Virus record (IMG/VR): IMGVR_UViG_3300029983_000007
Location: 62,001 to 126,000 of that record
Direction: 5' to 3' (one strand)
Length of the DNA stretch: 64,000 bases
The translations under genes were made by a program, and so were the position numbers. The notes beneath the pieces were generated by a model. It saw only the letters and a program-made list of their open reading frames with translations, did no database searches and was not told where the DNA came from. Positions within the stretch are counted from its first letter, which is position 1. Each line of letters begins with the position of its first letter. Below are positions 7,356-57,451 of this stretch, piece after piece.

Positions 7356-7654
7356 TTTTCTAAATCTTTTTTAGAAATATATTCAATAACGTCTTTTGAT
7401 TTTTTAATTTCAGAAATAACCAATGAATATAATGAATCTTTAATTATTATTTTGTCATCATTTGAAGAACTTTCTAATATTGCTAATAGATTACTCATAG
7501 GACTTAATTTATTTCTAACATTAGCAAGTTCTTCAATTTGATATTTTTCAATCTCTTTAAGAAGGTCTTGCTTATCATTCCAACTTGATGCTGGTTGTTG
7601 CTCGGAATCAAATTTCCAAAAACTATTTACTAAATTTAAAATTTTGCTTTTCAT
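7352..7654 (-). CDS. hypothetical protein
   Basis: 4-nt overlaps on both sides. Confidence 0.6.
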   Translation of the reverse strand: MKSKILNLVNSFWKFDSEQQPASSWNDKQDLLKEIEKYQIEELANVRNKLSPMSNLLAILESSSNDDKIIIKDSLYSLVISEIKKSKDVIEYISKKDLEK

Positions 7655-7902
7655 AACATTTTCAATTTTTCCAATTTTTCTAATCTTAATATTTTAATTT
7701 TGTAAGTTTTCATTTTATTCAAGAATAAATCTTCATTAGTGAAATCACCTAAGAAAATATCATATCCACCGTAATATAATTTATAATTAGTAAAATATCT
7801 CATTTCTACTTCACGTACCATAAATTTGTGAGTATAACCATACCAAGTACGATCTTCAATATCATATCTAAAATTATTTAATATTAGGGTAGCTTCTGTC
7901 AT
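7651..7902 (-). CDS. RxxKL-tail small protein
   Basis: ends ILRLEKLEKLKML. Confidence 0.65.
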   Translation of the reverse strand: MTEATLILNNFRYDIEDRTWYGYTHKFMVREVEMRYFTNYKLYYGGYDIFLGDFTNEDLFLNKMKTYKIKILRLEKLEKLKML

Positions 7903-9951: not shown

Positions 9952-11031
9952 TTAAATTTTATATAGAGGACAATCACGATTACAACGAATAAGGTTATTT
10001 CTAAAATTAATAGTCTTTTCGTTATTCCAAATATCATCAATAAAATTACCACATTTTAAAACATTTAGTCCTTCTTTCCAATTTTCTGTATTTGGAGTAA
10101 ATGAGCAAGGAAAATAATTTCCTTTGACATCAATATAGCTACTATAACAACTTGACTCACATGGCTCTACACATTGCTTCATTTTGTTTCTGTATTCATC
10201 TGATAATGAGTTATCTGATTCCAAATATTTTAGAAATTTGTGACTACTGCAACTATCAAATCCTATACTTATTTTTTCATCTAATGCAAATTTGCAAAGT
10301 TCATTAAACTTATCCTGTGGTAAAGGGTGAAATCTATTTTCTGCTCTACCTTTAGTTTTTAAACTTAGTAAAACTAATGCGTTAAGATTTTTTAATCTTT
10401 CATCATTTTTACAATCTTTAATTACTTGCATTGTATAGTCAAAATTTTCCAAGCAAATCATATCGTGAATGTTTACTTGTGTCATTCCTCTATCAGTTAA
10501 TTCTTTTATTGCGTTGTAACTATTGTCTTTATTATAAGATGTACCAACTGATACAGCAACTGCTCCCATTGTTTTTGATAATCTATCATACAATTCTGAT
10601 GTCATTCGTGATCCATTTATTGTTACATTAGGAACAACATCTTGAGAGCGAGTATAATCAAAAATATCCCACATATCTGGATTTGAATCAATGTCTGTTA
10701 TTCCAAATGCTACCTGAGTTACAGTTAAAGGAAGCTTAGAAAAAATGTTTTTATATGTGTCTAATGACATATATTCACCATCTTTATTGTTGCTCTTGTA
10801 GCAAAATGAACAGTTTTGTTTACACGCTGTGTCAATTTCAATATCAGCAATTTCAGGTAATCCTATTTCTAAATCACCATCATCATCTTCTGTTTTACCC
10901 CATCTGGCAAAAAACCCTGTTTTTTTGTTAAATAAGAAATTGTAGTTTTCTGATTTTAAAATTTTAACATCTTTATTATCTACAATTAGTGCTTCTTCAC
11001 CGTTTGAAAGTTTTAATTTAGTTTGTTTCAT
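9952..11031 (-). CDS. Radical SAM enzyme with SPASM/twitch-like C-terminal domain
   Basis: CKQNCSFC (CX3CX2C); C-terminal CES...YIDVKGNYFPCSF...CNRDCP. Confidence 0.9.
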   Translation of the reverse strand: MKQTKLKLSNGEEALIVDNKDVKILKSENYNFLFNKKTGFFARWGKTEDDDGDLEIGLPEIADIEIDTACKQNCSFCYKSNNKDGEYMSLDTYKNIFSKLPLTVTQVAFGITDIDSNPDMWDIFDYTRSQDVVPNVTINGSRMTSELYDRLSKTMGAVAVSVGTSYNKDNSYNAIKELTDRGMTQVNIHDMICLENFDYTMQVIKDCKNDERLKNLNALVLLSLKTKGRAENRFHPLPQDKFNELCKFALDEKISIGFDSCSSHKFLKYLESDNSLSDEYRNKMKQCVEPCESSCYSSYIDVKGNYFPCSFTPNTENWKEGLNVLKCGNFIDDIWNNEKTINFRNNLIRCNRDCPLYKI

Positions 11032-11285
11032 ATTTTGTTTAATTTGTTTAATTTGTCTCTTCTTTCAGATTTTAATGATGATTCAAATAATTCAATATAA
11101 TATAATGTATAGGGTTGTTCTGATATTCCTATACGCAAAATGTCTTTGTTAATAGATGAATATTGTAGTCCATCTACAGTGTAATTTTTATCAAAACTCA
11201 AATCTGATGGTATTCCAATTTGCTCAAATATGTTTGTTGGTTTTTTGAGTATAACTTTATCACCAATTTTCAAGTTTGTTATCAT
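11028..11285 (-). CDS. KIGD-type small protein with RxxKL tail
   Basis: LKIGDKVILK ... ERRDKLNKLNKI. Confidence 0.7.
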   Translation of the reverse strand: MITNLKIGDKVILKKPTNIFEQIGIPSDLSFDKNYTVDGLQYSSINKDILRIGISEQPYTLYYIELFESSLKSERRDKLNKLNKI

Positions 11286-12631: not shown

Positions 12632-13036
12632 TTATTGTATAAATATTTGTTTAATCATATTCAATCTTTCTTCATCTGTCATTGGCTTATTCATTTCATA
12701 TGAATATTTTTCAGATATCAATCTCAATCTTTCACTTTCAGAATAATCAAATAAATTATCTATATTTGAACAATCAGCTATGATATTATCTTTGTCATCA
12801 TAAATTATATAATTATCTTTATTCTGTTCTAATTCATCATATATACTATCAGATATAAAATCATTTATTATATTAGCTGTAGATACACCATAAATAGAAT
12901 TTAATAAAATAATATTAATCTTATTATAAGTTTCTAAAAAATCAAATAAATCTAATCCATTTTCATGAATACACTTCTCTTTTTTTCCTTCTTCTATAGA
13001 AAGTTCAACAAATTTTGTAAATGTGTATTTTTTCAT
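12632..13036 (-). CDS. hypothetical protein (start probably MKKYTF at 13036)
   Basis: ATG directly after upstream stop. Confidence 0.55.
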   Translation of the reverse strand: MKKYTFTKFVELSIEEGKKEKCIHENGLDLFDFLETYNKINIILLNSIYGVSTANIINDFISDSIYDELEQNKDNYIIYDDKDNIIADCSNIDNLFDYSESERLRLISEKYSYEMNKPMTDEERLNMIKQIFIQ

Positions 13037-13037
13037 A

Positions 13038-13841
13038 CTATTTTTTATTTTTGTCAATATCAGGAAATATGTATTCCAAGTAATATCTTGTTAATGAATA
13101 TACATCAGCCCATTCAGATTTGCTACCAGAAAAATTTGTATTGATGAATGACAAACCAGTATTATAAAAATATTCTTTATTTATCTCTTTTTTAACATCT
13201 GTTATTATATAGGCATCACCCAATTTATCACCAACTTTAAAATCAGCTATTTTATTAGCCATATCGTTTTCAGCAAACAATTCACAATGTTTACTGAAAA
13301 CTTCATCACAGGCAAATAATAACAAATCTAAACTGTATATGGTTTCACCTATTTGAGCCATTTTAACCTCAGTGAATTTAGGACGAACAAATGAAAGAGT
13401 ATTCCAAATAGCATGAACGTTATCTTTTTCAATAATTTCAATTAGTGAAGGAAGAATTTGTTTCATTGTTAAAAATTTGTCATCAACATGTGCATCAGAG
13501 GTTTCATCATCCATTTTGTCACGGTCATCACTTATTGTGAAAACAGACATTCTATCTCGATATGAAATTTCTTTATCTTTGTTAATAGATATAAATGTGA
13601 AATGACTACTATATTGTCTTACTAATAGTTGAACATTATCCTTAACTAAGAAAAACCAATCATAGTTTTTTCCCTCACTAAATTTTAAATCGTCAAAGGT
13701 AAATTTATCATCAACAGTATTGATAGGTATATATTTTAACAAATATTCAAAACTATATTTTAATTTTTGTATCAGCTTATTTTCATAAACTATGTGTTGT
13801 TTAAAATTGCTTTCTTCAAACTTGAAAATATCTTTTTCCAT
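13038..13841 (-). CDS. hypothetical protein
   Basis: 267 aa; TATCTTTG promoter element at 13865-13872. Confidence 0.7.
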   Translation of the reverse strand: MEKDIFKFEESNFKQHIVYENKLIQKLKYSFEYLLKYIPINTVDDKFTFDDLKFSEGKNYDWFFLVKDNVQLLVRQYSSHFTFISINKDKEISYRDRMSVFTISDDRDKMDDETSDAHVDDKFLTMKQILPSLIEIIEKDNVHAIWNTLSFVRPKFTEVKMAQIGETIYSLDLLLFACDEVFSKHCELFAENDMANKIADFKVGDKLGDAYIITDVKKEINKEYFYNTGLSFINTNFSGSKSEWADVYSLTRYYLEYIFPDIDKNKK

Positions 13842-14690: not shown

Positions 14691-14846
14691 TTATAGATTA
14701 TTTAATCTATTTAACTTTTCAGTTCTATCATTTTTTAATTTCTTTCTTTCTTCTTCTCTATCAAATATCATTTTAAATGTATAGTTATAAAATGCAGGAT
14801 TTGCTACTAAGTCGTAGCTGAAAAGTTTACTTGATTTTATTTCCAA
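14691..14846 (-). CDS. Small protein: prohead-protease-like peptide fused to RxxKL tail
   Basis: Manual translation LEIKSSKLFSYDLVANPAFYNYTFKMIFDREEERKKLKNDRTEKLNRLNNL (TTG start). Confidence 0.55.
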   Translation of the reverse strand: MEIKSSKLFSYDLVANPAFYNYTFKMIFDREEERKKLKNDRTEKLNRLNNL

Positions 14847-15138
14847 TTTGCTTCAATTTCTTTTTTCTTAGATGCTTAACATATTCATTAGGAAAGTTAT
14901 CATAGTCCAATACAGGCTTGTTTGAAGCTTCCTTTATGACATCTAATTGCCATTGTATTGACTCAACTGGATCATCACATTCACTTTCATAAGATATTAT
15001 AGTAATTGGATTTTCAGTACAAGCTTCAGGTAAGTCCGTTTCATCGTTATAATATACTTCATAAATACTAAAATGAACATCAGAGTATAAATCTGTTGTT
15101 ATTCTTTTTGCTAAAATTCTATAATTCCAATGTGTCAT
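14827..15138 (-). CDS. hypothetical protein with RxxKL tail
   Basis: WNYRI...IYEVYY; ends HLRKKKLKQI. Confidence 0.7.
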   Translation of the reverse strand: MTHWNYRILAKRITTDLYSDVHFSIYEVYYNDETDLPEACTENPITIISYESECDDPVESIQWQLDVIKEASNKPVLDYDNFPNEYVKHLRKKKLKQIGNKIK

Positions 15139-15429: not shown

Positions 15430-15723
15430 TTATTGAATTGAATTTAATTTGTTTAATTTATTTTTTCTTGATAAATTTTTGATAGCATTATCAATTAGGT
15501 TATCTGTAATTTCTTTTTTATAATATCTGAAATTATAAGAAGACTTCATTATTTCTAATTGATGTTCATTTGCATTCATTAATTTATTTAAAATACCCTC
15601 TTCTAATTCTTTATAGAATAGCATTTGACCTACCACTTGAATATCCTTATATTTTAATGTGAGTTCTGAAATTAATTCTAAGTTATCACAACTTTTTTTT
15701 AATTGTTCAATTAATTCCTCCAT
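15430..15723 (-). CDS. RxxKL-tail small protein
   Basis: ends LSRKNKLNKLNSIQ. Confidence 0.65.
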   Translation of the reverse strand: MEELIEQLKKSCDNLELISELTLKYKDIQVVGQMLFYKELEEGILNKLMNANEHQLEIMKSSYNFRYYKKEITDNLIDNAIKNLSRKNKLNKLNSIQ

Positions 15724-20107: not shown

Positions 20108-20410
20108 TTATGATTCAAGTAAAATATTATTATTTTTTGTGATTTTTTGTGATTCTTCTATTTGTTTTAATTTTACTTTCCTTTCTTCTTTCTCAGAATA
20201 AAAAAATCTATTAAAATTAGGAAGTTCTTCATAATCTTTTTCTAATGAGAAACAATAATAAGTATATCGATTATTTTCATTAATATTACGCATCTCAACA
20301 AAATATCTAAATAACTCATTCATAACATAATAATTACCTCTAACGAAATCATATATTGATTCTTTACAACAATATTTCCTTTTTGTGTTTTTAATTCTAC
20401 TATCCAACAT
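20108..20410 (-). CDS. RxxKL-tail protein, paralog of 20400..20648
   Basis: KYCCKESIY...FYSEKEERKVKLKQI. Confidence 0.65.
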   Translation of the reverse strand: MLDSRIKNTKRKYCCKESIYDFVRGNYYVMNELFRYFVEMRNINENNRYTYYCFSLEKDYEELPNFNRFFYSEKEERKVKLKQIEESQKITKNNNILLES

Positions 20411-20648
20411 TATTGAGGCTTTCTAATTTTAACATTCTTTCTTCTTTTTCACTGTAAAAATAATCATAAAAATAAAAATAGTAAGTTGTATATTTAAATA
20501 TACAGAAAATTTCATCAAACTCTATTCCATCCACTATCAAACGTAATATAACATCACTGTTGCTACACCAAGTTGTGTAATAACTATGCCCTTTTTCAAA
20601 TCTATATATTGACTTCTTACAAAGATACTTTGTACCTATTTTCAACAT
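20400..20648 (-). CDS. KIG-type RxxKL-tail protein
   Basis: MLKIGTKYLCKKSIY...FYSEKEERMLKLESL. Confidence 0.65.
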   Translation of the reverse strand: MLKIGTKYLCKKSIYRFEKGHSYYTTWCSNSDVILRLIVDGIEFDEIFCIFKYTTYYFYFYDYFYSEKEERMLKLESLNNVG

Positions 20649-23655: not shown

Positions 23656-24528
23656 TTAAAACTTTTTCATTTTTTGGTAAGAAATTTCATTTCTTTCGTT
23701 ACTACGTTGCTTATCTTTCTTTTTTTGTTCTTTCTTGTCCTTCCAAGATGTACCTTCAGATTTATCTTTGATATTTAAGATTGGTTTGATTTTATCAAGA
23801 ATCAAAGCAGTAGGTCCAATTGCTTTTTCAATCATTTCAGAGTTTTTGTAAGCAAATGGTGATTCATCAATTGTACTTTTACATACAGAAGTTGAATATA
23901 TACCTTTCATTACTCTCTGAAAGTCTTTTAAATCAACTGACTCTTTTGCTTTTGATCTTGACATCAAACGACCAGAACCATGTGGAGCTGAGTTATTCCA
24001 ATCTTCATTTGATTTACCTTCACATATAAGTATTCCATCTCTCATATTGAATGGTATAATCATTTTTTCTCCAACATATGAAGATATAGCACCTTTTCTT
24101 ATGATAAAGTCTTTGAAATCCACATAGTTATGTATTGAATGAATTTCTTCATCAAATTTTTTGATATTCAATGCTTTTTTTATCAAAGACAACATAGTTT
24201 TTCTGCTCCATAGAGCATATTGTTGAGCAAAAATCATATCAAATAGATAACCAATAAGATATTCTCCGTCTAAATATTCTTTGCCAATATTAAGACTGTA
24301 TCTTGTTCTCAATTCTTTTATTTTTTTATCAATATCAGATTTTGGATAAGTATTCATAGTAATGTCATCCAATTCCATGTTATATTCTTTGGTTGCAACA
24401 AATACTTTACCATTTGCTACTTTAGTCCAGTGTTCAGCTATTTTCAAACCAAAGTTTCTTGAGCCAGAGTGAACTGTTACCCAATAATCATTAGTCTTAT
24501 CTGACTTACCAAGTTCAATAAAGTGATT
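23656..24528 (-). CDS. rtcB: RtcB RNA ligase, 3' exon
   Basis: NHFIE, VHSGSRNFG, HNY, RKGA, SAPHGSGR, IDESPFAYK. Confidence 0.93.
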   Translation of the reverse strand, partial: NHFIELGKSDKTNDYWVTVHSGSRNFGLKIAEHWTKVANGKVFVATKEYNMELDDITMNTYPKSDIDKKIKELRTRYSLNIGKEYLDGEYLIGYLFDMIFAQQYALWSRKTMLSLIKKALNIKKFDEEIHSIHNYVDFKDFIIRKGAISSYVGEKMIIPFNMRDGILICEGKSNEDWNNSAPHGSGRLMSRSKAKESVDLKDFQRVMKGIYSTSVCKSTIDESPFAYKNSEMIEKAIGPTALILDKIKPILNIKDKSEGTSWKDKKEQKKKDKQRSNERNEISYQKMKKF

Positions 24529-25622
24529 CAATTTTGTTACTATTATTTTAATTTCAATCTAAATAACCTCATTTTTATAGATTGCTTTGTTCTTTTAAGA
24601 TTTTCTATTGATTCAGATATATCATTATTTATAATATAATTATCTTCATAGTCTGTCCATATTTTACGTTCAAAATCTATTTTTTTGATATTAATTGGTC
24701 TTTCCCAATTTAATATTTTTTGAGCAGAATCATATTTTCTATTTATACTCATACAATCTTTATAATATAATATTTCAATTATTTTTTGAGAATTTTCATT
24801 CATCACCATTATATTATATAAGTTATCTCTTTTATTTTTATTTGTTATTTTTTTATATCCAATAATGTTAGATAAAAAAACAACAAATTGTTCAGCAAGT
24901 TTACTAGAACATGTAACTAAAGATATGAAAGGTAATCCTTTTTTTGTAAATCCTAATGATCCATCGCCATCTATAACTCCTCTCCAGTAATCAATTTCTA
25001 TTATATTATCTGGTTTCTGAATTGTGTGTGATTTTTTACCAACAGGTAAATACTTTTTAAATTCATTTCTTGTTTCTAATTCAAATATTTTTAATGCTGA
25101 TGTATTTGAAATATATTTGTATTCTTTAATATTAATATTTCTTGTTCTTTCAGTTATTGAAACATTACAATTAAGAATAGATTTTATATATTTTAATATA
25201 TTATCATCACTTTTATTTATTTCAAGTGTGATTCTTCCTCTATTTCTAGTTGATTCGTATAAATTACCATCAGTTTGTAATAAACCTATAATGTATGCAT
25301 GTTTCTTATTTAAAATGTCTATTTTCATAATGTGTTTTTATTTGTATATATAATTTCACTTTATTGAAAATTTACATTTCATTGAAATTGTAATAACGAG
25401 ATAGACATTTCTGCTATCTTCAATATCTTCTTATTAAATATTGTTCAGAATGTACCTTTTACCTTTGTGTATTACAGTGAGATAAAACAAGTCCCTCCAT
25501 TCGTTACAGGGTGTTATCTAAAATGACAGAGCACTTCCCTCGGTATTAGCATCACAGCCGTCCACCGATTTGGACGATTTTAACTACTATTAGCTATTAA
25601 CTAATACGGTGGCAATCAATTC
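24529..25622 (-). mobile_element. Group I intron in rtcB carrying a LAGLIDADG endonuclease
   Basis: Interrupts GGG|NHF; exon GGTGGT pairs with IGS GCCACC (U.G at splice site); TGATT/AATCA P10; AAATCGGT/ATACCGAG P4; GAATG/CATTC P7; terminal G. Confidence 0.9.
24543..25328 (-). CDS. Intron-encoded double-motif LAGLIDADG homing endonuclease
   Basis: YIIGLLQTDGNL and YWRGVIDGDGSL; own late-type promoter at 25345-25353. Confidence 0.9.
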   Translation of the reverse strand: MKIDILNKKHAYIIGLLQTDGNLYESTRNRGRITLEINKSDDNILKYIKSILNCNVSITERTRNINIKEYKYISNTSALKIFELETRNEFKKYLPVGKKSHTIQKPDNIIEIDYWRGVIDGDGSLGFTKKGLPFISLVTCSSKLAEQFVVFLSNIIGYKKITNKNKRDNLYNIMVMNENSQKIIEILYYKDCMSINRKYDSAQKILNWERPINIKKIDFERKIWTDYEDNYIINNDISESIENLKRTKQSIKMRLFRLKLK

Positions 25623-26195: not shown

Positions 26196-26226
26196 CAAAT
26201 GTACTACATTTATTTTGATTGACAAA
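26196..26226 (-). promoter_or_regulatory. Bacteroidota-type promoter for rtcB
   Basis: TTTG-N19-TACATTTG. Confidence 0.7.
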
Positions 26227-26467
26227 ATATTTCATTCAATTTATTTATTTTATTTATTTTATTCATTCTTAAAACTCTTTTACTAATGAAAAATGATCCA
26301 TAACTTATATAACATATAACTCCAGCATCTGTCATTATTGATATAGCTCCAAGCATTATTTCTAATACTTTATAATCTTTGCCTACTGAAATAAGGTGAT
26401 CATTTGTGTTATCAATTTTGATGCAAGTAACAATTTCACCAATTTTATATTTATTTATTTTTTTCAT
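26210..26467 (-). CDS. KIG-type RxxK-tail protein
   Basis: YKIGEIVTCI...VLRMNKINKI. Confidence 0.65.
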   Translation of the reverse strand: MKKINKYKIGEIVTCIKIDNTNDHLISVGKDYKVLEIMLGAISIMTDAGVICYISYGSFFISKRVLRMNKINKINKLNEIFCQSK

Positions 26468-26789
26468 TTATTTTATTAAGTTTCAATGTTCTATATTCTT
26501 TTACCCCAATGAATCTTTTCATATCAAAAACAGTATGTCCATGTATCTTTTCAACTTCATCTAATATATATGATGTGTTTTCATATGTACTACTGGTATT
26601 ATCAATTTTGTCTCCACAATTTCCATCATCTCCCCAATATGTATGAATTTCTTTAATTGTATAATATTTATACTTTTCTAATGGATTTATTTTATGATAT
26701 TCTAAAATACAAGAAGAATAATCATAAAATATTTCCTTTGAGTAAGGTTTATCATCAATACAAACCATAATATCACCTACTTTGTACAT
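26451..26789 (-). CDS. KVGD-type RxxKL-tail protein
   Basis: MYKVGDIMVCIDD...KEYRTLKLNKI. Confidence 0.7.
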   Translation of the reverse strand: MYKVGDIMVCIDDKPYSKEIFYDYSSCILEYHKINPLEKYKYYTIKEIHTYWGDDGNCGDKIDNTSSTYENTSYILDEVEKIHGHTVFDMKRFIGVKEYRTLKLNKINEKNK

Positions 26790-27017
26790 ATCTTATTAAG
26801 TTTTTCTAATTTCATTTTTCTATAATAAGAAGTTTTAATAAAATATGATGATTTAAACCATAATACAATATTTCTTGTTTCAATACGAATGTAGATTGAA
26901 TAAAAAAGATGATTTGTTGATTTTATTTTATATCTTTCTCATTTTTTTTAGATATTCACGAGAAAGGTAATCTCCATCATCATTAATAAAAGTAACAGAA
27001 TCACCTACTTTGAACAT
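26777..27017 (-). pseudogene. Disrupted KVGD-type RxxKL-tail gene
   Basis: MFKVGDSVTFINDD...; break at A8 run near 26942-26949; resumes to YYRKMKLEKLNKICTK. Confidence 0.65.
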
Positions 27018-27274
27018 ATTTTATTGAGTTTTTCTAATTTCATTTTTCTAATTGATTGATCATCTGTGAAAAATTCTATCGGTATAAATTGGGAAAATCT
27101 TTTTGTGTCAGTTTTTATACAAATTTTATTAAAAAAATGATAATCTAAATCATTGATTTTATATTTTTTGCCTATTGTTAAATGTTGTTCCCAGTAATCA
27201 TCATTGTCATATTTTACGCAAGTAACAACTTGTCCAATTTTAAAATCTTGATAAGTCAATTCTTTATTTTGCAT
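27005..27274 (-). CDS. KIG-type RxxKL-tail protein
   Basis: FKIGQVVTCV...SIRKMKLEKLNKICSK. Confidence 0.7.
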   Translation of the reverse strand: MQNKELTYQDFKIGQVVTCVKYDNDDYWEQHLTIGKKYKINDLDYHFFNKICIKTDTKRFSQFIPIEFFTDDQSIRKMKLEKLNKICSK

Positions 27275-27543
27275 AATTTATTGAGTTTTATTTTTCTTAA
27301 AATTGAAATCAATTCTCTTTCAGTTATAAAATGATTACTTATTGATTGTCTGCATATATTTCCATTGATATTAGATTTAATAATTATTCCATATTTTGAA
27401 TTATTATTGTTATAACTTATTGAAAGTATATCTACATCATGTGAAATATTTAAATTAAATTTTTTGTTATAATATTGTCTTAATTCTCTTAATAAGAGTA
27501 AATATGATTTAATGTCTAAGTTTGAAACTATATTGTCTGACAT
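27256..27543 (-). CDS. RxxKL-tail protein
   Basis: ends ILRKIKLNKLCKIKN. Confidence 0.6.
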   Translation of the reverse strand: MSDNIVSNLDIKSYLLLLRELRQYYNKKFNLNISHDVDILSISYNNNNSKYGIIIKSNINGNICRQSISNHFITERELISILRKIKLNKLCKIKN

Positions 27544-27866
27544 AATTTTACAAGTTTTTGTTTTCTCAAAAAAATATTATGTTCTTTATCATCAACAAAT
27601 TGATATAGCACATCACCTATAACTTCATGATTAGAATACATAAGTGTATATATTTTGTGTTCAAACCTAATAGAAAAAGATGTTTCGCATGAATAGAAAA
27701 TTTCAAACCTTCTATTGTATCTTTCATTAAGTAATGTTATTGCAGCAGACCTAATTATTTCTTTTCTTTCATCTTTTGTAATAAAATTATCCATTTGATA
27801 ACAATTACGAGGCATACCCCATAATCCATTATCTTGTTTTTTTGATTTTATTGGTATTATATCCAT
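27528..27866 (-). CDS. RxxKL-tail protein
   Basis: ends FLRKQKLVKLCQTI. Confidence 0.65.
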   Translation of the reverse strand: MDIIPIKSKKQDNGLWGMPRNCYQMDNFITKDERKEIIRSAAITLLNERYNRRFEIFYSCETSFSIRFEHKIYTLMYSNHEVIGDVLYQFVDDKEHNIFLRKQKLVKLCQTI

Positions 27867-28383: not shown

Positions 28384-28550
28384 TTTAAGTTATTTATTTT
28401 TTCTATCTTTTTCTTTCTTTCTATTTTTGTTATTTTTCTTTTTAGTTCAGCAGCTAATTTTTCATCTATATCAAAAGATTCTGGATATAAACTTGCATAA
28501 TCAAAATTAGATATACTATATAAATCTTCAAATTTCAGATTCTTCTTCAC
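28380..28550 (-). CDS. Small protein: PolB motif-A-like peptide fused to RxxKI tail
   Basis: Manual translation (GTG) MKKNLKFEDLYSISNFDYASLYPESFDIDEKLAAELKRKITKIERKKKIEKINNLK; ATGA-coupled to next gene. Confidence 0.6.
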   Translation of the reverse strand: MKKNLKFEDLYSISNFDYASLYPESFDIDEKLAAELKRKITKIERKKKIEKINNLK

Positions 28551-29187
28551 TACAATTTATTTTATTTAATTTTATTTTTCTATTGAATTTTATCAATAGT
28601 TCAGTATCCTTATATCTTAATATAGACAATTCAAATCCGTTATTATTATAATGATTTTCTAATTTAGATATAAATAATTCAAAATTTTCAGATAGAACTC
28701 CATTTTTTTCAAATATTTTTGGCTTGTTATTTTTATTTTCATATATTCCTCTAATTAGAACCTTATTTATACGTGTTGAAAAATTTATATAATCTTGGTC
28801 ATTGCATAATTTCCAATTTTGATTTAATATTAATTTTTTAATTTTTTTATATTGTTCATCTATGATACCCCAATAGTGATATTCATTTTCACTGTCAGCT
28901 CCTTTGTTATAGCTACTTATAAATATTACATATGGAGTATCTTTATATAAAGTTTTGAATAATTCATATTTAGATTTGCAATCTAAATCAAACACTGGAT
29001 AAATAACATTTTTAAATTTTGACTCAATTAAAACTTCACAATATCTATCAATATTAATCATAGTTCTGAAGTATTTCATTATACTACCAATAGATTTATA
29101 TTTTAGTTTTGATGTTGTATCATAACTTCCATAATGTGTTGTTTGATGTAGATATATTAATTCATTTTTATTTTTAAATAAAATCAT
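28528..29187 (-). CDS. hypothetical protein, possible AEP primase-like fold, RxxKL tail
   Basis: VFDLD, SS...HYW, D.DY; ends FNRKIKLNKI. Confidence 0.55.
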   Translation of the reverse strand: MILFKNKNELIYLHQTTHYGSYDTTSKLKYKSIGSIMKYFRTMINIDRYCEVLIESKFKNVIYPVFDLDCKSKYELFKTLYKDTPYVIFISSYNKGADSENEYHYWGIIDEQYKKIKKLILNQNWKLCNDQDYINFSTRINKVLIRGIYENKNNKPKIFEKNGVLSENFELFISKLENHYNNNGFELSILRYKDTELLIKFNRKIKLNKINCSEEESEI

Positions 29188-30623: not shown

Positions 30624-30937
30624 AAAAAATTAAAAAAATAATAATTTTTTTAAATAAGTCATTTAATCCATATTATGAATTAAATAAACAGGCAAAAACA
30701 ATTGAAAATATATATGAAAAACTTATATCAAGTCAATTAGATAGTAGACTGAATGAACTTGAAAGACTTAGAAATATGAGTGAAGAAGATATAAAAAATG
30801 AGAAAGAAAAAATCTTAAATATAGAGGCAACTAAAATATTAACTCAGTTAGAATGTAATCCAGAATTATATAGAGTATTTAATAATATATTAAGAATAAA
30901 TAAATTTAAAAAAATAGAAGATAGTAAAAATGAGTAA
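30620..30937 (+). CDS. RxxK-tail protein
   Basis: ends ILRINKFKKIEDSKNE. Confidence 0.6.
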   Translation: MKKIKKIIIFLNKSFNPYYELNKQAKTIENIYEKLISSQLDSRLNELERLRNMSEEDIKNEKEKILNIEATKILTQLECNPELYRVFNNILRINKFKKIEDSKNE

Positions 30938-31514
30938 TTTAATAGAACATGCAAAAAAAGAATTTATAGCATTAGGATATAAACCAGTTGATGAATGTGA
31001 AGAAGGACCAAATAGATGGGTACAAGAAAATGTATTGGAATTACTTGAGATGTTTTCTAAACAAGGACATTCAGGATTTTCAGCAAAAATTGTTATTGAC
31101 TATTTTAAAAAATTAGCAAATTTTAAACCAATTGCGCCAATTATGTGTACTGATGATGAATGGATCGATGTTTCTATATATAATAATGATGTGACTTATC
31201 AAAATACTCGTTGTTCTGCTGTTTTTAAAAATTCAATAAATGACTCACCATATTATTTGGATGCAATAGTTTTTGTTGAAGATGGAAATTCATCTTATAC
31301 TGGAGGTGCTTTTAATAAGAAGCATGAACGTATCACAAGTAGTCAAGAAATAAAAATTCCGTTTATTCCAAAATCTTTTTATGTCGATGTTGTAGATATT
31401 GATGGAGAACATCACATTAAAGATGAATCTCAATTAAAGGAAATTTGGGAATATTATGAGCATCAAGAAACAAAATCATTTATTAGATTACAAAAATTAA
31501 AAGCATTAAAATGA
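30930..31514 (+). CDS. phage protein with RxxKL tail
   Basis: QGHSGFSA motif; ends FIRLQKLKALK. Confidence 0.7.
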   Translation: MSNLIEHAKKEFIALGYKPVDECEEGPNRWVQENVLELLEMFSKQGHSGFSAKIVIDYFKKLANFKPIAPIMCTDDEWIDVSIYNNDVTYQNTRCSAVFKNSINDSPYYLDAIVFVEDGNSSYTGGAFNKKHERITSSQEIKIPFIPKSFYVDVVDIDGEHHIKDESQLKEIWEYYEHQETKSFIRLQKLKALK

Positions 31515-42850: not shown

Positions 42851-44191
42851 ATGGCTAAAAAAGAAAAAAGTGATAAAATATTTGTACTTGATACAAGTGT
42901 AATACTTTATGATCACAATGCAATTTACAATTTTGAAGAAAATGATGTTGCAATTCCTATTACAGTATTCGAAGAATTAGATGATTTCAAAAAGGGTAAT
43001 GACACAATTAATTATGAGGCAAGAGAATTTATTAGAAAAACAGATAAATTAGCATCTAAATGTAATTTGAGCGATTGGATTCCTATTGGTAAAGGAAAAG
43101 GTAGAGTTAAGGTTGTGATGAATGAAACAACTGGAACAACTGATGCTTGTTTAGTTTTTAAATCTACAAAGCCAGATCATTTAATTTTAAATACTGCGTT
43201 GTCATTGGTAGAAGAATATCCTGACAAAAAGATTATACTTGTATCAAAAGATATAAATTTAAGATTGAAAGCTAAATCTTTAAATGTTAATTCTGAAGAT
43301 TATTTAACAGGTAAAATTAAAGATACTGATAAATTATTTACAGGTAGATCAACAATTGAATTAGATACAGATGATATAATTACTAAACTATATCAAGATA
43401 ATGTTTGTACACCACAAGAACTTGGTATTACAGATTTATTAAATAATAAATATTTAATTATTAAATCATCTATTTCTGCTGCATCAGCTTTAGCATATTA
43501 TAATTCATCAAAACAGCAAGTGGAAAGAATAGATAAAGAAACATGTTATAAAATAACACCAAGAAATTCTGAACAAGTATTTGCGTTACATGCATTATTA
43601 AATCCTGATGTTAAATTAGTATCATTACAAGGAGTTGCAGGAACAGGAAAAACATTGTTAGCTTTGGCTGCTGCACTTAGTCAGAAGAGAAATTTTAAAC
43701 AAATATTTTTGGCGAGACCAATTGTGCCATTAAGTGGAAAAGACATAGGCTATCTTCCTGGCGATGTTGATCAGAAGACATCAGTGTACATGATGCCTCT
43801 GTTCGATAATCTAAAATTTATACAAAGTCAGTTTAAAGATACTGATAAGGAATATAAATTCATTCAAGATTGTATTAAAGACGAAAAAGTAATAATAACT
43901 CCTTTGACATATATTCGTGGACGTAGTATTTCAAATGTTTTTTTTATTGTTGACGAATCTCAGAACCTTACTCCTCATGAAATAAAAACTATTATAACAA
44001 GAGCAGGAGAAGGTACAAAGATTGTGTTCACTGGAGATATAAATCAGATCGACACACCTTATTTAGATGCTCAAAGTAATGGATTATCACATTTAATTGC
44101 TAAAATAAAAGGACAACCTATTTATTCTCATGTGACTCTTGAAAAAGGAGAACGTTCTGAATTAGCAAATATTGCAAATGAATTACTTTAA
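42851..44191 (+). CDS. phoH: PIN-PhoH (PhoH2/YlaK-like) protein
   Basis: N-terminal VLDTSV PIN domain; GVAGTGKT, YIRGRS, DESQN, GDINQID. Confidence 0.92.
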   Translation: MAKKEKSDKIFVLDTSVILYDHNAIYNFEENDVAIPITVFEELDDFKKGNDTINYEAREFIRKTDKLASKCNLSDWIPIGKGKGRVKVVMNETTGTTDACLVFKSTKPDHLILNTALSLVEEYPDKKIILVSKDINLRLKAKSLNVNSEDYLTGKIKDTDKLFTGRSTIELDTDDIITKLYQDNVCTPQELGITDLLNNKYLIIKSSISAASALAYYNSSKQQVERIDKETCYKITPRNSEQVFALHALLNPDVKLVSLQGVAGTGKTLLALAAALSQKRNFKQIFLARPIVPLSGKDIGYLPGDVDQKTSVYMMPLFDNLKFIQSQFKDTDKEYKFIQDCIKDEKVIITPLTYIRGRSISNVFFIVDESQNLTPHEIKTIITRAGEGTKIVFTGDINQIDTPYLDAQSNGLSHLIAKIKGQPIYSHVTLEKGERSELANIANELL

Positions 44192-45511: not shown

Positions 45512-45730
45512 TTACCAACAGTCATAATCAGTTATATTTTTTTCTTCTTTAAGATAATTATCTATTATAGTTACTGCTGTTGCTATTCCTGTTGGAGTAA
45601 ATCTATAACTAAATCTACCACCTATTCCTGTTTGTGGAGATTTTTTTATTTTTTTTTGTTTTTCCATCCACTCATTTGCGGATTTTTCTTCTTTCTCTGT
45701 TAAATCAAATTTAATCATATTTTTAATCAT
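45512..45730 (-). CDS. small phage protein
   Basis: IGGRFSYRFTPTGI...ITDYDCW. Confidence 0.65.
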   Translation of the reverse strand: MIKNMIKFDLTEKEEKSANEWMEKQKKIKKSPQTGIGGRFSYRFTPTGIATAVTIIDNYLKEEKNITDYDCW

Positions 45731-46592
45731 TTGGTTCTATGTGAATATAAATTTCACTTCTCTTTATTTTATTTTTTATTTCATTCTCAATTTTATCACA
45801 GACAGAATGAGCTTCTAATAAAGTTAATTCAGAATTTAAATGTAAGTCAAATTTTATAAATGTATCTGCACCTGAGCTTCTAACTTTTAAATCATGAAAT
45901 AGTTTTACATCTTCACAACTATTTAATATATCTACTATAATATCACTCACACCTACTGGTGCTTTATCTAACAGAACATCAATTGCATTTTTAGCTAATC
46001 TATAAGAAACTAATATAATTATAAAGGCAACACCTAATGCAGCAACAGAATCAGCCCAATAAACATTAAAATTTATAAGAATCAAACCAACTAATACAAC
46101 ACATGAACTCCATATATCTGTTTTAAAATGAATAGAATCTGCTTCTAATGCTTGACTGTTATATTTTTTTGCTACTTTTTTTAACATTCTTGAACGATTT
46201 ATATCAATTATAATAGATGATATAATAACCACATAACTCCATATAGTTACTTCAACATCAAAATCGTTAGAAATTAATTTTGATAATGATTCTGAAATTA
46301 TCCAAATGCTTGTAACACCTAATAACATTGCTTCTGCAAATGCTGATAAATTCTCTACTTTACCGTGCCCATAATTATGTTTATAATCTGCAGGTTTATC
46401 TGATACTCTAACAGAAAAATATGTAATAATAGCAGCAACCATATCCAATGTTGAATGTAATGCTTCTGATAATATTCCTAAACTGCCTGTCATCAATCCA
46501 ATTATAAGCTTGAATAATGTCAATGCTCCTGATGCAATAACAGATAAAAAAGCTGCTTTCTTTTTTTCAGTTGTGTCTAATTTTTGTTCCAT
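45723..46592 (-). CDS. Cation diffusion facilitator (FieF/YiiP-like) metal transporter
   Basis: SEALHSTLD, KPADYKHNYGHGKVE, ADSIHFKTD, IHIEP. Confidence 0.92.
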   Translation of the reverse strand: MEQKLDTTEKKKAAFLSVIASGALTLFKLIIGLMTGSLGILSEALHSTLDMVAAIITYFSVRVSDKPADYKHNYGHGKVENLSAFAEAMLLGVTSIWIISESLSKLISNDFDVEVTIWSYVVIISSIIIDINRSRMLKKVAKKYNSQALEADSIHFKTDIWSSCVVLVGLILINFNVYWADSVAALGVAFIIILVSYRLAKNAIDVLLDKAPVGVSDIIVDILNSCEDVKLFHDLKVRSSGADTFIKFDLHLNSELTLLEAHSVCDKIENEIKNKIKRSEIYIHIEPND

Positions 46593-46603: not shown

Positions 46604-46846
46604 TTAATTTACTTCACTAAGAGTTTTGAGTTTTTGTTTACGAATCATTTTTTTTACAAATAAATGATAATCATATAGTTTTATTGATATTTTAATATTT
46701 CTATATTTTGCCAATTCCATATCAAAATACTTTACTGTGTAGCAAGCTACTTCATCAGAGTAAGAGTGTATTTTTATATCTTCTATTGTATTTTCCCCTA
46801 ATGCATTTATAGATAATAAATAACTCTTTACTGTTGGATTTTTCAT
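46604..46846 (-). CDS. RxxKL-tail protein
   Basis: ends MIRKQKLKTLSEVN. Confidence 0.65.
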   Translation of the reverse strand: MKNPTVKSYLLSINALGENTIEDIKIHSYSDEVACYTVKYFDMELAKYRNIKISIKLYDYHLFVKKMIRKQKLKTLSEVN

Positions 46847-47650: not shown

Positions 47651-47734
47651 TTTATTTAGTTTTTTATAATTATTGTACAAAGATAATAAAAAAATGAGCT
47701 ATAATAATCTATAGCTCATTTTATTTTTAATGAT

Positions 47735-48025
47735 TTAATGTTTTTTGTGTTTATAATATAATTTTTTACTATATTTTTCTTCTTGTTTTTTTCTTTCTTC
47801 TAATTTTTTATTAATTTCATTATAAGTGTTATTGGATAATTTTTCCAAGTATTTCAACTTTTTCTTTCTATCTTCTTTTTTCCTTACTTGTGATTCGTAT
47901 TTTTCTATTATTTTAGCAGTAATAGAATCAATAATTACATAATTACCAGATCCGTTCAAATTTTTCTGGTGAATAATATTCGCAGCATTTAGTATTTTTT
48001 GATATAGTTCACTGTTTTTTGACAT
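47735..48025 (-). CDS. Small protein: major-capsid-like segment fused to RxxKL tail
   Basis: LYQKILNAANIIHQKNLNGSGNYVIIDSITAKII then EDRKKKLKYLEKL. Confidence 0.6.
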   Translation of the reverse strand: MSKNSELYQKILNAANIIHQKNLNGSGNYVIIDSITAKIIEKYESQVRKKEDRKKKLKYLEKLSNNTYNEINKKLEERKKQEEKYSKKLYYKHKKH

Positions 48026-48068
48026 GTTACATTTTTAATAAAAAAAGTCTCATAAAGAGACTTTTTAT

Positions 48069-48140
48069 TTGAGCAAGAGGTCTGATTTGAACAGAATCTT
48101 TTTACTGGAAGTAAAAAGCATTAACATATGCTACCTCTGC
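48069..48140 (-). tRNA. Degenerate tRNA-Gly(TCC)-like gene
   Basis: GCAGAGG/CCTCTTGC bulged acceptor; GCAT/ATGC D-stem; TTTTA-CTTCCAG-TAAAA anticodon arm; TCTG-TTCAAAT-CAGA T-arm; ends TCAA; terminator follows. Confidence 0.6.
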
Positions 48141-48311: not shown

Positions 48312-48464
48312 ATGAAAAACAAATCAAAAATTTCGATATCATTAAAAAATGAATTGATAGATTATTTAAATGACTTGAGTTTAAATAAATCTAAATTTAT
48401 AGAAAAATTAATAGAAGAGTATAAAATAATAAAAATAAATAATGATAATAACAAAAAAAGTTAA
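48312..48464 (+). CDS. Small ribbon-helix-helix protein upstream of endonuclease
   Basis: MKNKSKISISLKNELIDYLNDLSLNKSKFIEKLIEEY; below track cut-off. Confidence 0.7.
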   Translation: MKNKSKISISLKNELIDYLNDLSLNKSKFIEKLIEEYKIIKINNDNNKKS

Positions 48465-49431
48465 AATTCATATTAAAGGAATATCAATAAAAAGATATAA
48501 AAAATTAGGTTATAATGTTGATACTAAAGGATTAAATACTATTAATGTTGAAGATCTTCCTAAATGTAGTAATATTAAAGTCATGGTGAAATGTGATAAT
48601 TGTGATTATGAAAAAGAATTAAAGATTCAAGATTATTATTTATCTTTTAAAAATAATAAATATTGTTGTAATAAATGCTCATATGAAAATTATAAAAAAA
48701 CAATGTTAGAAAGATATGGAGTTGAAAATGGATTTCAATATAAAGACATAAAAGAAAAATCTAATAGCACTAAAATAAAATTATATGGAGATGAAAATTA
48801 CAATAATAGAGAAAAAGCGATAGAAACATGTTTAGATAAATATGGTGTTGAAAATCCTAATCAAAATTATAAAATAAAAAAAAAATCTAATAATACTTGC
48901 TTAGAAAAATATGGATTTGAAACAGCATCTAAAAATGAAAAAGTAAAGGAAAAAATAAAAAAAACAAATTTGAAAAGATGGAACAGTACATGTACATTAC
49001 ATTCAGAAAAACAAATTGATAAAATTAAACAAATATTTATTGATAAATATGGAGTTGATAATCCTATGAAGAATTTAGAAATATTTTTAAAAGCCCAAAA
49101 AACAGCTCTAAATCGTAAAAAATTTAAAGAAACTGAATTATTATATCAAGGTACATATGAATTAGATTTTTTAAATAATTATTATGAAAAAATTAATATT
49201 GAAAATGGTAAATCAATAAAAATAATTTATAATAATAATAAAACTGTGTATCATTCTGATTTTTTTTTATCTGAAAAAAATTTAATTATAGAAATAAAAT
49301 CATCATATTGGTATAATAGATATTATGATAAAAATATAATTAAACAAAAAGAATGTGAAAAATTAGGATATAATTATATCATAATAATAGATAAAAATTA
49401 TAATGATTTTAATAAATTAATAATGATTTAA
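48442..49431 (+). CDS. Putative homing endonuclease: Zn-finger, KYGVEN repeats, PD-(D/E)XK nuclease
   Basis: CDNC/CNKC; several (K/R)YGV(E/D)N repeats; YHSDFFL...IIEIKS. Confidence 0.75.
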   Translation: MIITKKVKIHIKGISIKRYKKLGYNVDTKGLNTINVEDLPKCSNIKVMVKCDNCDYEKELKIQDYYLSFKNNKYCCNKCSYENYKKTMLERYGVENGFQYKDIKEKSNSTKIKLYGDENYNNREKAIETCLDKYGVENPNQNYKIKKKSNNTCLEKYGFETASKNEKVKEKIKKTNLKRWNSTCTLHSEKQIDKIKQIFIDKYGVDNPMKNLEIFLKAQKTALNRKKFKETELLYQGTYELDFLNNYYEKINIENGKSIKIIYNNNKTVYHSDFFLSEKNLIIEIKSSYWYNRYYDKNIIKQKECEKLGYNYIIIIDKNYNDFNKLIMI

Positions 49432-49470: not shown

Positions 49471-50952
49471 TTATATATTTGTTTCTTCTAATTTTTTTAA
49501 TTCATCTTTTAACTTTTCAAGTTCTTCGTGTTTTTGATTCATTACTTTCTTCCATTTTTTTCTATCAGAATAAACTTCTCCCATTACTTGAGTAACAACA
49601 CCATCTTCATTCTTAAATACTGATCCATTGAGAGTTACAATATCATCAGGTTCAATTGTTAATTGATGTCCATTAAATAATGAGTAATCTTTACCTTTTA
49701 CTTTTTGTCCTTTATATGAGTCTGCTGATATGTTAAATTCTCTCATTGTGGTAGGATACAGGGATGCGAAGTCAAAACAACAAGTCCATGTTGCCATTCC
49801 TCTCACTGGATCTTTAACCCATCCACCTTTAATAGATTCAGATTCAGAATCACTATATTCACTATCTTCATTTCTTACAAGTACAATATTCTTTTGATCT
49901 CTTAATTTTTCTCTTAAAATTCCTTCTGTCAGTGCAAGTGTTGAAATTGCATCTTTAATTTTAATTTTACCTAATACAGCCATACCATAAAGAATATCTA
50001 CATATTTCATTTTAACGTGAATTCTTTGTACCAGACAACTATCTACAGCATTATAAAAAACGAATTTCTTAAAATCTTCTCTATGTAATCTTTTTAAATC
50101 TCCATCATAGTTAATTTTCTTGACTTCTTTACCAAGAATTTTTTCTGATGCAAAATCAAGAGATAAACTTTCTTTAACTTTAACAGATTGATCCCATTTC
50201 TTAAATAATTCCATATAATCCACTATAACTCTATGAGCTGGTAATTCAGCATAATCTAAATGTATTGCATTAGGAGGATTGAATGGTTTGTTAAGTTTCT
50301 TTGTGAAAGATGCTACTTCAGGTTCTAGTCCTAATTTTCTTGCCCTTGCAACTAAGAATGTCCAGTCATATGCAATAAAATTCCAGCCAGTCATTACTGG
50401 CATTTTTGGAACTAATTTATTGAAAAATGCATGAAGCATATCAAATTCAGTTTTATAATGAACATATTTAAATTTATAATCAGTATCAAATTTTTTGAAG
50501 TGAGTATTTAAATCTGATTCAATGTTTTCAATTTGTTTTGAATCCAGTGATTCTGTTCCAATTACTAACACTTTATTCTTATTTACAATTGATATTGTTT
50601 GAATCGCACTTTCTGCTAAATGAGGTTCAGGTTTTTTATCTAATATTTCATTTTCAATATCGACAAAGAATATATCTGGTTCATTATAACTATATATTTC
50701 ATTTTTTTCATCTTCATCAAAACTATCAATAAAATCATAAATAGAATATCTATTAGGATATTTTGTGAATATTTCTTTTACAGCACTACCATCCCATGTA
50801 ACATATCTACCAGATTTTTCTGAATCATCATCAGTAGTTTTTATGAATTTTGTACATCTTGCCCAAGGTTTATATTTTAATTTTATTTGACCTGATTTAT
50901 CTATGTAACTTATTATAAGGTTATTATTTCTGTATTCTGTGTCTATAAGCAT
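49471..50952 (-). CDS. Family B DNA polymerase, N-terminal subunit (exonuclease plus motif A) of a split gene
   Basis: FVDIE, TGWNFIAYD, YNAVDS, GGWV, FDFASLYP; ends in the fingers helix; no KxxxNSxYG or DTDS. Confidence 0.88.
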   Translation of the reverse strand: MLIDTEYRNNNLIISYIDKSGQIKLKYKPWARCTKFIKTTDDDSEKSGRYVTWDGSAVKEIFTKYPNRYSIYDFIDSFDEDEKNEIYSYNEPDIFFVDIENEILDKKPEPHLAESAIQTISIVNKNKVLVIGTESLDSKQIENIESDLNTHFKKFDTDYKFKYVHYKTEFDMLHAFFNKLVPKMPVMTGWNFIAYDWTFLVARARKLGLEPEVASFTKKLNKPFNPPNAIHLDYAELPAHRVIVDYMELFKKWDQSVKVKESLSLDFASEKILGKEVKKINYDGDLKRLHREDFKKFVFYNAVDSCLVQRIHVKMKYVDILYGMAVLGKIKIKDAISTLALTEGILREKLRDQKNIVLVRNEDSEYSDSESESIKGGWVKDPVRGMATWTCCFDFASLYPTTMREFNISADSYKGQKVKGKDYSLFNGHQLTIEPDDIVTLNGSVFKNEDGVVTQVMGEVYSDRKKWKKVMNQKHEELEKLKDELKKLEETNI

Positions 50953-51111: not shown

Positions 51112-54687
<3,576 letters not shown>

Positions 54688-56719: not shown

Positions 56720-57451
56720 TTAATAATATTTTAATCTAGATTTATTTAAACTTATATTTCTCACTAAAGTAGAATAAGTTAAATTTAAATCTTTTGAGGC
56801 TTGTCCTATGGTATCATAAATTTTAGAAGTTAATGTATCAATAACTTTTTTTAATTTTTTGTGATTTTTACCAGATCTTTTTTCAATTTGATCAAAAGAT
56901 TGAGTTATTCCAAAAAAATGAGAAGTTGTTCCTGTTTTTCCATACCAATAATTATTTTCTCCACTAGTTTTTAATTTCCTTTCTATGCTTTGTTTTTTTC
57001 CAAAATTAGGATTTTTTTCTCCTTTATTGCCAAAATTTGCATTGCCTTCACCTTTAATTTTTTCACAAAATTCTTTAGATCTTTTTTTACCATAAGAAGG
57101 ATGCAATGTTCCTTTTATTTTTCTTAATTTTTCTTTAGTTTCTTCACTATGTTTACCTTTACTACCACCTGATGCTAAATTCATCATTTCAAATCCATTT
57201 TTTTTATACTCATTTATATAAAAAATTTCTTTTTGATCTAATATATCTTGTGTAACATCATCACAATTAAATTCGCATATTATTTCTATTGTGTGATTGT
57301 CAAAACCATATTTTACTAAAGAATTAAATATTTTTGGTTGACGTTCACATTTTAAATTTTTATATTTTCTAAAACGTTTTTTTAAATCCCAACTTTGTCC
57401 TATATAAATTTTATCAGATGGACTTGTTATTTTATATATTCCAATATTCAT
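56720..57451 (-). CDS. GIY-YIG homing endonuclease with NUMOD3 repeats
   Basis: GIYKIT...IYIGQS...R; KHSEETKEKL. Confidence 0.88.
   Translation of the reverse strand: MNIGIYKITSPSDKIYIGQSWDLKKRFRKYKNLKCERQPKIFNSLVKYGFDNHTIEIICEFNCDDVTQDILDQKEIFYINEYKKNGFEMMNLASGGSKGKHSEETKEKLRKIKGTLHPSYGKKRSKEFCEKIKGEGNANFGNKGEKNPNFGKKQSIERKLKTSGENNYWYGKTGTTSHFFGITQSFDQIEKRSGKNHKKLKKVIDTLTSKIYDTIGQASKDLNLTYSTLVRNISLNKSRLKYY

Follow-up and report, generated by a model that had tools for sequence, protein, structure and literature searches.

A conserved microprotein of an uncultured giant phage that joins a major capsid protein segment to a scaffold-like tail

Why would a giant phage keep a 40-residue piece of a major capsid protein (MCP) as a small gene of its own? 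The question is raised by a 96-codon open reading frame (ORF) in the 64,000-nt stretch of phage DNA analyzed here (the window), for which the initial annotation, made from the sequence alone, had recognized a gp23-type capsid fragment fused to a short tail shared with other small ORFs. That observation is confirmed by our analysis. The same annotation inferred that capsid-, protease- and polymerase-like mini-proteins form a library of decoys that titrate host sensors, or of dominant-negative fragments that act against competing phages, and this interpretation is only partly supported.

The window has about 25% G+C and is densely packed with small minus-strand genes. Its family-B DNA polymerase is split, and the 493-aa N-terminal half (49471-50952; exonuclease domain plus motif A) is 55% identical to that of the 735-kb uncultured phages LR756501 and LR756503, indicating that the window comes from a relative of the largest known "megaphages." This half ends at 49471 and is followed on the other strand by a DUF7487 homing-endonuclease gene (48442-49431), an arrangement that is also seen in the syntenic metagenomic contig L001, while the C-terminal half is not in the window. 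A megablast search of the region against 50,697 deposited phage records found no match at the DNA level.

A capsid protein segment fused to a conserved tail

The ORF starts with ATG and is organized together with its flanking elements as follows.

47735..48025, minus strand: complete ORF, 96 aa, an MCP-derived microprotein with a scaffold-like tail
47894..48013, minus strand: residues 5-44, segment homologous to the helix-loop-strand-helix of gp23-type MCPs, corresponding to Microcystis phage Mel-JY01 MCP 400-439 and to mature T4 gp23 about 289-328
47831..47878, minus strand: residues 50-65, conserved tail block, with the core motif R53-x-x-K56-L57-x-x-L60 at 47846-47869
47738..47830, minus strand: residues 66-96, Lys/Glu-rich C-terminal extension, probably dispensable
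47691..47722, minus strand: intrinsic-terminator-like hairpin 13 nt after the stop codon, with a 14-pair stem followed by a T run (3 such sites in the 3 kb scanned against 0.1 expected)
48040..48066, minus strand: short GC-cored hairpin plus T run between tRNA-Gly (48071-48140) and the ORF start, read directly from the sequence and not reported by the terminator scan

The gene therefore looks like a self-contained cassette. Homologues with 99%, 65%, 63% and 70% identity lie in syntenic metagenomic contigs, where the gene is somewhat less conserved (65%) than its neighbors (68 to 85%).

The resemblance to the capsid protein is real and specific. The top Pfam hit is Gp23 (PF07068, E 0.0033, aa 5-45 against profile positions 222-262), with a score of 17.3 bits that is below the gathering score of 24.4, as are those of other family members (14 to 23 bits), and the top PHROG hit is phrog_138 major head protein (E 0.014), with both hits falling on equivalent parts of the two profiles. 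BLASTP against the Mel-JY01 MCP aligns aa 7-41 with MCP 402-436 (15/35 identities, 43%), and through that MCP the segment corresponds to the helix, Gly-rich loop, strand and helix that follow the long spine helix of gp23. Four MCPs searched with phmmer against all 255 window ORFs of at least 30 aa hit only this one (E 1.6e-7 to 7.5e-4), a profile of 51 family members aligns to a profile of four MCPs over 40 columns with 97.3% probability (hhalign, E 1.8e-11), and a hidden Markov model (HMM) of the family recovers 82 full-length MCP-type proteins in 80 independent MCP loci. The resemblance is therefore homology and not a consequence of AT-rich composition, and the initial annotation had the gp23 motif right. 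A PDB sequence search with the family profile found only coiled-coil hits through the tail and neither gp23 nor gp24.

The protein is nevertheless far too short to be a shell subunit, since only about 40 of the 400 to 570 residues of an MCP are present and the N-arm, E-loop, P-domain and the rest of the A-domain of the HK97 fold (at least about 350 aa) are missing. The AlphaFold model built on 51 sequences is confident (pLDDT 92.8) and shows helix 3-23, a loop at 24-33 where the MCP has its strand, and one long helix 34-94 that carries the tail. A Foldseek search with this model gave no meaningful match in the PDB and no capsid match, as expected for two helices.

With respect to selection, the MCP-like segment evolves under constraint, with dN/dS of 0.18 to 0.19 at dS of about 1.0 against the 65%-identical syntenic homologues (contigs L001 and L006), whereas the C-terminal extension is less constrained (0.5 to 0.7). 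Lack of a profile match to gp23-family MCPs, or homologues that evolve neutrally and are not expressed, had been named in advance as grounds for rejecting the observation; we find a profile match, and the segment does not evolve neutrally. The tail block is invariant in the five close homologues. In this ORF the tail sits 35 residues from the end, but in a homologue (L008) a stop codon follows the tail immediately and the downstream frame has decayed, and the extension is absent from most family members. This is an indication that the extra 31 residues are dispensable and that the functional unit is segment plus tail.

A large family and its arrays in other uncultured phages

The gene is not a one-off. 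A profile of the first 47 residues, scored against 1.84 billion representative proteins, gave 70 representatives at 50% identity with E<=1e-3, nearly all of them 51 to 91 aa long and aligned from their own second or third residue, with a few genuine MCPs at E of about 2e-4. A second search found at least 125 clusters at 90% identity, all of 45 to 105 aa and named "hypothetical protein," some of them on contigs of 215 kb and 658 kb, that share the same N-terminus, the same MCP segment and the tail R-x-x-K-[LI]-x-x-[LI], with start position and segment boundaries conserved at 27 to 75% identity. We define the family by a length of 45 to 105 aa, an MCP segment starting 2 to 8 residues from the N-terminus and a R-x-x-K-[LI]-x-x-[LIMF] tail after residue 35, criteria that the window ORF fulfills, differing only by its 31-aa extension. 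The strict motif is carried by 172 of the 186 small family proteins collected. L7, I18 and N28 in the capsid-like part and R53 and K56 in the tail are nearly invariant across 51 members, and nearly all residues that MCPs themselves conserve are kept. tblastn with three family members against all deposited phage genomes found only full-length MCPs and never a mini-gene, no Pfam or PHROG family matched other than the MCP itself, and literature searches found no description of such proteins.

The tail is likewise real. The motif R..K[LI]..[LIM] lies in the last 30 residues of 19 of 107 window genes (about 18%), whereas shuffles give 0.3 to 0.6 on average and at most 4 in 1000. These 19 genes lie between 306 and 46846 (for example 7651-7902, 11028-11285, 14827-15138, 20108-20648, 26210-27866, 28528-29187 and 46604-46846), and several are tandem paralogues, although their N-terminal parts are otherwise unrelated. 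Codons at the fixed positions vary synonymously (AGA/AGG/CGT for Arg; TTA/TTG/CTT/CTC for Leu), so the motif is selected at the protein level. In 8 of 20 tail-bearing genes the next start codon lies 23 to 37 nt after the Arg codon, but 8 of 20 tails, including this one, have no downstream start within 90 nt, and together with the synonymous variation this leads us to reject the tail as a by-product of an overlapping translation-initiation region.

We asked whether other tail-bearing ORFs of the window also carry fragments of core genes, as the initial annotation had proposed for a polymerase-like and a protease-like mini-protein. Three tail-bearing ORFs are relevant here.

30930..31514, plus strand: gene with a Tad3 (type I Thoeris inhibitor) domain at residues 2-125 (Pfam PF25185, E 3.3e-34), followed by a linker of about 60 aa and the tail at the extreme C-terminus
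15430..15723, minus strand: 97-aa ORF, the only weak candidate for a protease-like mini-protein in this window
12632..13057, minus strand: ORF with a PolB motif-B-like string and a variant tail, probably the PolB-like mini-protein of the initial annotation

The PolB-like reading is not supported, since it rests on a regular-expression hit and the ORF has no DNA_pol_B profile hit at E<=1. The protease-like one is weak, since phmmer with a protease-type mini-protein from another uncultured phage (contig L020) gives E 3e-4 against the window ORFs, but the alignment covers residues 61-93 and runs mostly through the tail region, without Pfam or PHROG support. Pfam and PHROG searches of the other tail-bearing ORFs at E<=1 gave nothing apart from Tad3, and phmmer against 130 large ORFs gave nothing convincing.

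Outside this window, however, mini-proteins that carry segments of several essential head proteins on the same tail do exist as tandem arrays. In several uncultured jumbo and mega-phage lineages (L011:1319-2008; L020 and L021:7001-7461; L022:7001-7210, on contigs up to 215 kb and 658 kb) we observe overlapping genes of 44 to 69 aa that always follow a NusG-like gene and a conserved HNH-like gene of about 260 aa, and that precede dCMP deaminase or a 4HBT thioesterase. The capsid-type mini-gene heads these arrays and is followed by up to three more mini-genes. One carries the MCP spine-helix segment (top Pfam and PHROG hits Gp23 and major head protein), one carries an N-terminal segment of the prohead protease and belongs to a family of 54 clusters (hhalign against a prohead protease, 94.3%, E 1.1e-7), and one carries a C-terminal portal segment (Pfam Portal_T4 E 0.013; PHROG portal E 0.021; phmmer against the S-RIM2 portal E 1e-4), all with the same tail. 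PDB searches with the protease-like and portal-like mini-proteins found nothing. The number of mini-genes per array varies between lineages (1, 1, 3, 4), as accessory genes do. Neither the NusG nor the 260-aa HNH-like neighbor has a homologue in the window.

The window encodes further functions. A 291-aa ORF matches only the C-terminal two-thirds of RtcB RNA ligase (profile 154-425) and is preceded by a LAGLIDADG endonuclease ORF (23656-25328, minus strand), which may reflect a split gene or a gene invaded by an intein or homing endonuclease. A radical-SAM/SPASM protein and a GIY-YIG-type homing endonuclease (9952-11031 and 56720-57451, both minus strand) are present, and with DUF7487 and LAGLIDADG this makes at least three kinds of homing endonuclease in 64 kb. 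A cation-diffusion-facilitator transporter (Cation_efflux plus ZT_dimer, E 7.5e-46) and a PhoH-like protein (45723-46592, minus strand, and 42851-44191, plus strand) are encoded as well, with the transporter present in L006 and L008 but absent from the same position in L001. A 1191-aa collagen-repeat tail-fiber-like protein (51112-54687, minus strand) lies in a local G+C peak (33%) and is overlapped on both strands by several spurious repeat-derived ORFs.

Resemblance of the tail to scaffold C-termini

To find out what the tail resembles, we examined the C-termini of head proteins directly. The gene just upstream of the MCP occupies the gp22 scaffold position, and its product is acidic, rich in coiled coil and, where seen, encoded between protease and MCP. 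In Mel-JY01, Flavobacterium phage immuto and LR756508 this protein ends in R-x-x-K-L-x-x-I two to three residues before the stop. In 80 IMG/VR loci with related MCPs (L027-L106), 67 of 75 upstream proteins have the motif, with 0 to 6 (mostly 1 to 3) residues after it, and a second MCP clade has R-M-Q-[KQ]-L-A-G-I. Among 1,532 small ORFs of those loci only 4 carry the motif at the C-terminus, and all 4 are truncated scaffolds. The scaffold-position proteins of this large MCP clade (the genes upstream of each MCP in L027-L106; L019:5371-6471; L026:1489-2730; L009:57-1736) share a strongly conserved C-terminal peptide (consensus about R-F-K-K-L-A-G-I-I-K) that, to our knowledge, has not been described, and the immuto protein is annotated as "DNA polymerase phi-like protein," which looks like a misannotation.

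This likeness rests on four positions only. A profile of 164 tails scores scaffold ends at noise (0.6 bits) and a profile of 57 scaffold ends does not find the tails, with positions 2, 6 and 7 differing systematically (F/W/M, A and G/N in scaffolds against K/R, any residue and K/R in tails). The scaffolds are one homologous family and in effect one evolutionary observation, LR756511 and the T4-type and cyanophage gp22 proteins (S-RIM2 and CC31) lack the motif, and the comparison does not include this phage's own MCP and scaffold, which are not in the window. We consider the link between tail and scaffold about as likely as not. With respect to a possible pairing of mini-protein and MCP, identities to 11 MCP types differ by only 2 to 4 residues of 37, and no contig examined held both a mini-gene and an MCP. 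One mini-protein (P0084) shares the exact 8-residue word MVVSPAVA with one freshwater MCP clade (53 loci, among the IMG/VR loci L107-L162), which hints that a mini-protein tracks a particular MCP lineage, although identities differ too little to prove it.

Possible roles of the microprotein

Our analysis establishes the homology of the segment, the two-module architecture, the size of the family, the purifying selection, the arrays elsewhere and the occurrence of the four-position motif in scaffold-position proteins, whereas the helical face, binding to the capsid, location in the procapsid and any effect on assembly are inferred from sequence and a predicted structure. The first module (aa 5-44), judged by HK97-fold topology alone, is probably from the A domain, and the second is a C-terminal helix with four fixed positions, R1, K4, L5 and [LI]8. 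These positions would lie on one face of an alpha-helix, with the differing positions 2, 6 and 7 on the other faces, and the same four, at the same distance from the C-terminus, end the scaffold-position protein in the phage clades whose MCPs resemble the first module most. We propose that the tail is a scaffold-type MCP-docking peptide that would bring the microprotein to the inner face of the assembling procapsid, at or next to the scaffold-binding site, where the MCP-derived segment would offer a second, capsomer-type contact.

We hold this reading tentatively, at a probability of roughly 0.4, of which about 0.25 falls on an auxiliary or competing internal scaffold for the phage's own very large capsid and about 0.15 on an assembly poison against co-infecting relatives. 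The protease- and portal-segment mini-proteins would work the same way on their own partners. The genomic context speaks against it, since the mini-genes sit among replication and nucleotide-metabolism genes (next to NusG, 5'-3' exonuclease and dCMP deaminase, or next to PolB) and not in head modules, with none within 5 kb of 80 MCP genes, and the Tad3 homologue fits cargo or counter-defense better than assembly. The resemblance of the tail to the scaffold C-terminus points toward the procapsid rather than toward cytosolic host sensors. The dominant-negative alternative of the initial annotation remains compatible with a procapsid-directed role.

The closest precedent is SaPI1 CpmB, a helical protein of 72 aa that shares only a short RIIK motif near its C-terminus with the 80alpha scaffolding protein, forms the same helix-and-hook and competes with it for one site on the capsid protein (PMC5644958). 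That motif is likewise a basic/hydrophobic amphipathic helix, docking on the inner face of an HK97-fold capsid protein, and the N-terminal part does something else. There is no sequence homology (RIIK there, R-x-x-K-L-x-x-I here), CpmB is encoded by a satellite and not by the phage itself, its N-terminal module is a dimerization domain and not a copy of a capsid-protein segment, and docking is only inferred here. The T4 Gol peptide, which acts with the Lit protease, is also a short piece of a gp23-type MCP with biological activity of its own, but Gol is a region of gp23 itself near the N-terminus, the segment here maps about 200 residues further on and so does not correspond to Gol, and we found no link to Lit or EF-Tu. 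Eukaryotic microProteins are dominant-negative single-module derivatives of an interaction segment of a larger protein, kept under selection and presumed to engage the parent's partners, but they belong to a different kingdom and have different targets, and here a common, putatively docking tail is added and several parent proteins are sampled in one array. T4 internal proteins with a capsid-targeting sequence and encapsulin cargo with C-terminal loading peptides share with our family a short terminal peptide, common to unrelated proteins, that directs proteins into an HK97-fold shell, a role that is hypothetical for the tail; the T4 signal is N-terminal and cleaved off, and there is no sequence similarity.

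Among the alternatives, the cytosolic decoy of the initial annotation survives as an unlikely but possible reading, in which the microproteins would display the most conserved epitopes of MCP, protease and portal and occupy host pattern-recognition sensors without activating them, with the tail serving for oligomerization or stability. It is favored by the copying of the most conserved motifs of three head proteins, by early-type neighborhoods or a stand-alone cassette with its own terminator, by the variable number of mini-genes and by the Tad3 anti-Thoeris homologue with the same tail. Host sensors of MCP, portal and other core proteins are widespread (10.64898/2026.01.04.697583). Short MCP peptides can be recognized, as in the case of Gol and Lit. 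However, no sensor is identified, a fragment that binds a sensor would more likely trigger it, fold-recognizing sensors would not see a 40-residue piece, and the reading does not explain why the tail copies the scaffold C-terminal face. There is also a detection bias, since only fragments of conserved motifs can be recognized at all, and a 2025 compendium of 268 anti-defense proteins shows no such class in the passages searched.

Equally doubtful, though not excluded, is that the tail has nothing to do with the scaffold and is a generic docking or oligomerization helix for some other hub (membrane, clamp, chaperone or nucleic acid), with the MCP-like segment re-used for an unrelated function. 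The reciprocal profile searches at noise, the basic and amphipathic character of the tail, which it shares with many docking helices, the coiled-coil-only PDB hits and the nonstructural genomic context are in line with this. Against it stand the specificity of the motif in MCP loci, the shared positions that form exactly one helical face at the same distance from the C-terminus, and the MCP-conserved residues of the first module, which suggest that it still makes MCP-type contacts.

Somewhat less likely still is that the tail is a cargo-loading peptide that packs many small proteins into the giant capsid for co-injection, this ORF being one cargo that would act in the next host or inside the head. 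The reading uses the same scaffold-like docking evidence and fits a tail that sits on very diverse N-terminal domains, including a Tad3 sponge homologue, and injected anti-restriction proteins are documented (PMC12373910). It does not explain why head-protein segments are the cargo, sponge-type proteins need high copy numbers, we see no protease-site pattern upstream of the tail in the sequences inspected, and the docking itself is unproven. Finally, a nonfunctional remnant of a partial MCP duplication, for example one dragged along by the DUF7487 homing endonuclease that lies 400 nt upstream on the other strand (HNH-like genes also precede the arrays elsewhere), is essentially ruled out, as is chance, by the dN/dS of about 0.18, by the conserved start and boundaries in at least 125 clusters, by synteny in phages from 215 kb to 658 kb and by the synonymous codon variation in the tail.

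A broader reading, possible but less likely than not, is that uncultured jumbo and mega-phages with T4-type heads carry a modular system in which a scaffold-derived C-terminal docking helix is attached to copies of the most conserved segments of their own head proteins (capsid, prohead protease and portal) and, in this phage, to about a fifth of its small genes, including the anti-Thoeris homologue. The helix would act as a general address label for the inside of the procapsid, and the head-protein fragments would be a previously unseen class of assembly modulators, or of inter-phage or anti-sensor weapons, built by sampling one's own structural proteins.

The finding is much broader than the initial annotation could show, and as an architecture it has no close precedent. 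Both the capsid-type and the protease-type families are entirely unannotated and absent from cultured phages, so they would otherwise stay invisible to standard annotation. The head-protein-fragment microproteins would be the first case of phages keeping short, selected copies of their own capsid, protease and portal segments as separate genes, which opens direct tests of how very large capsids are sized, or of how phages interfere with rivals or with host sensors of structural proteins. If the tail is a capsid-docking label, it gives a sequence rule for predicting which proteins giant phages load into or attach to their procapsids, a question that is otherwise inaccessible for uncultured megaphages.
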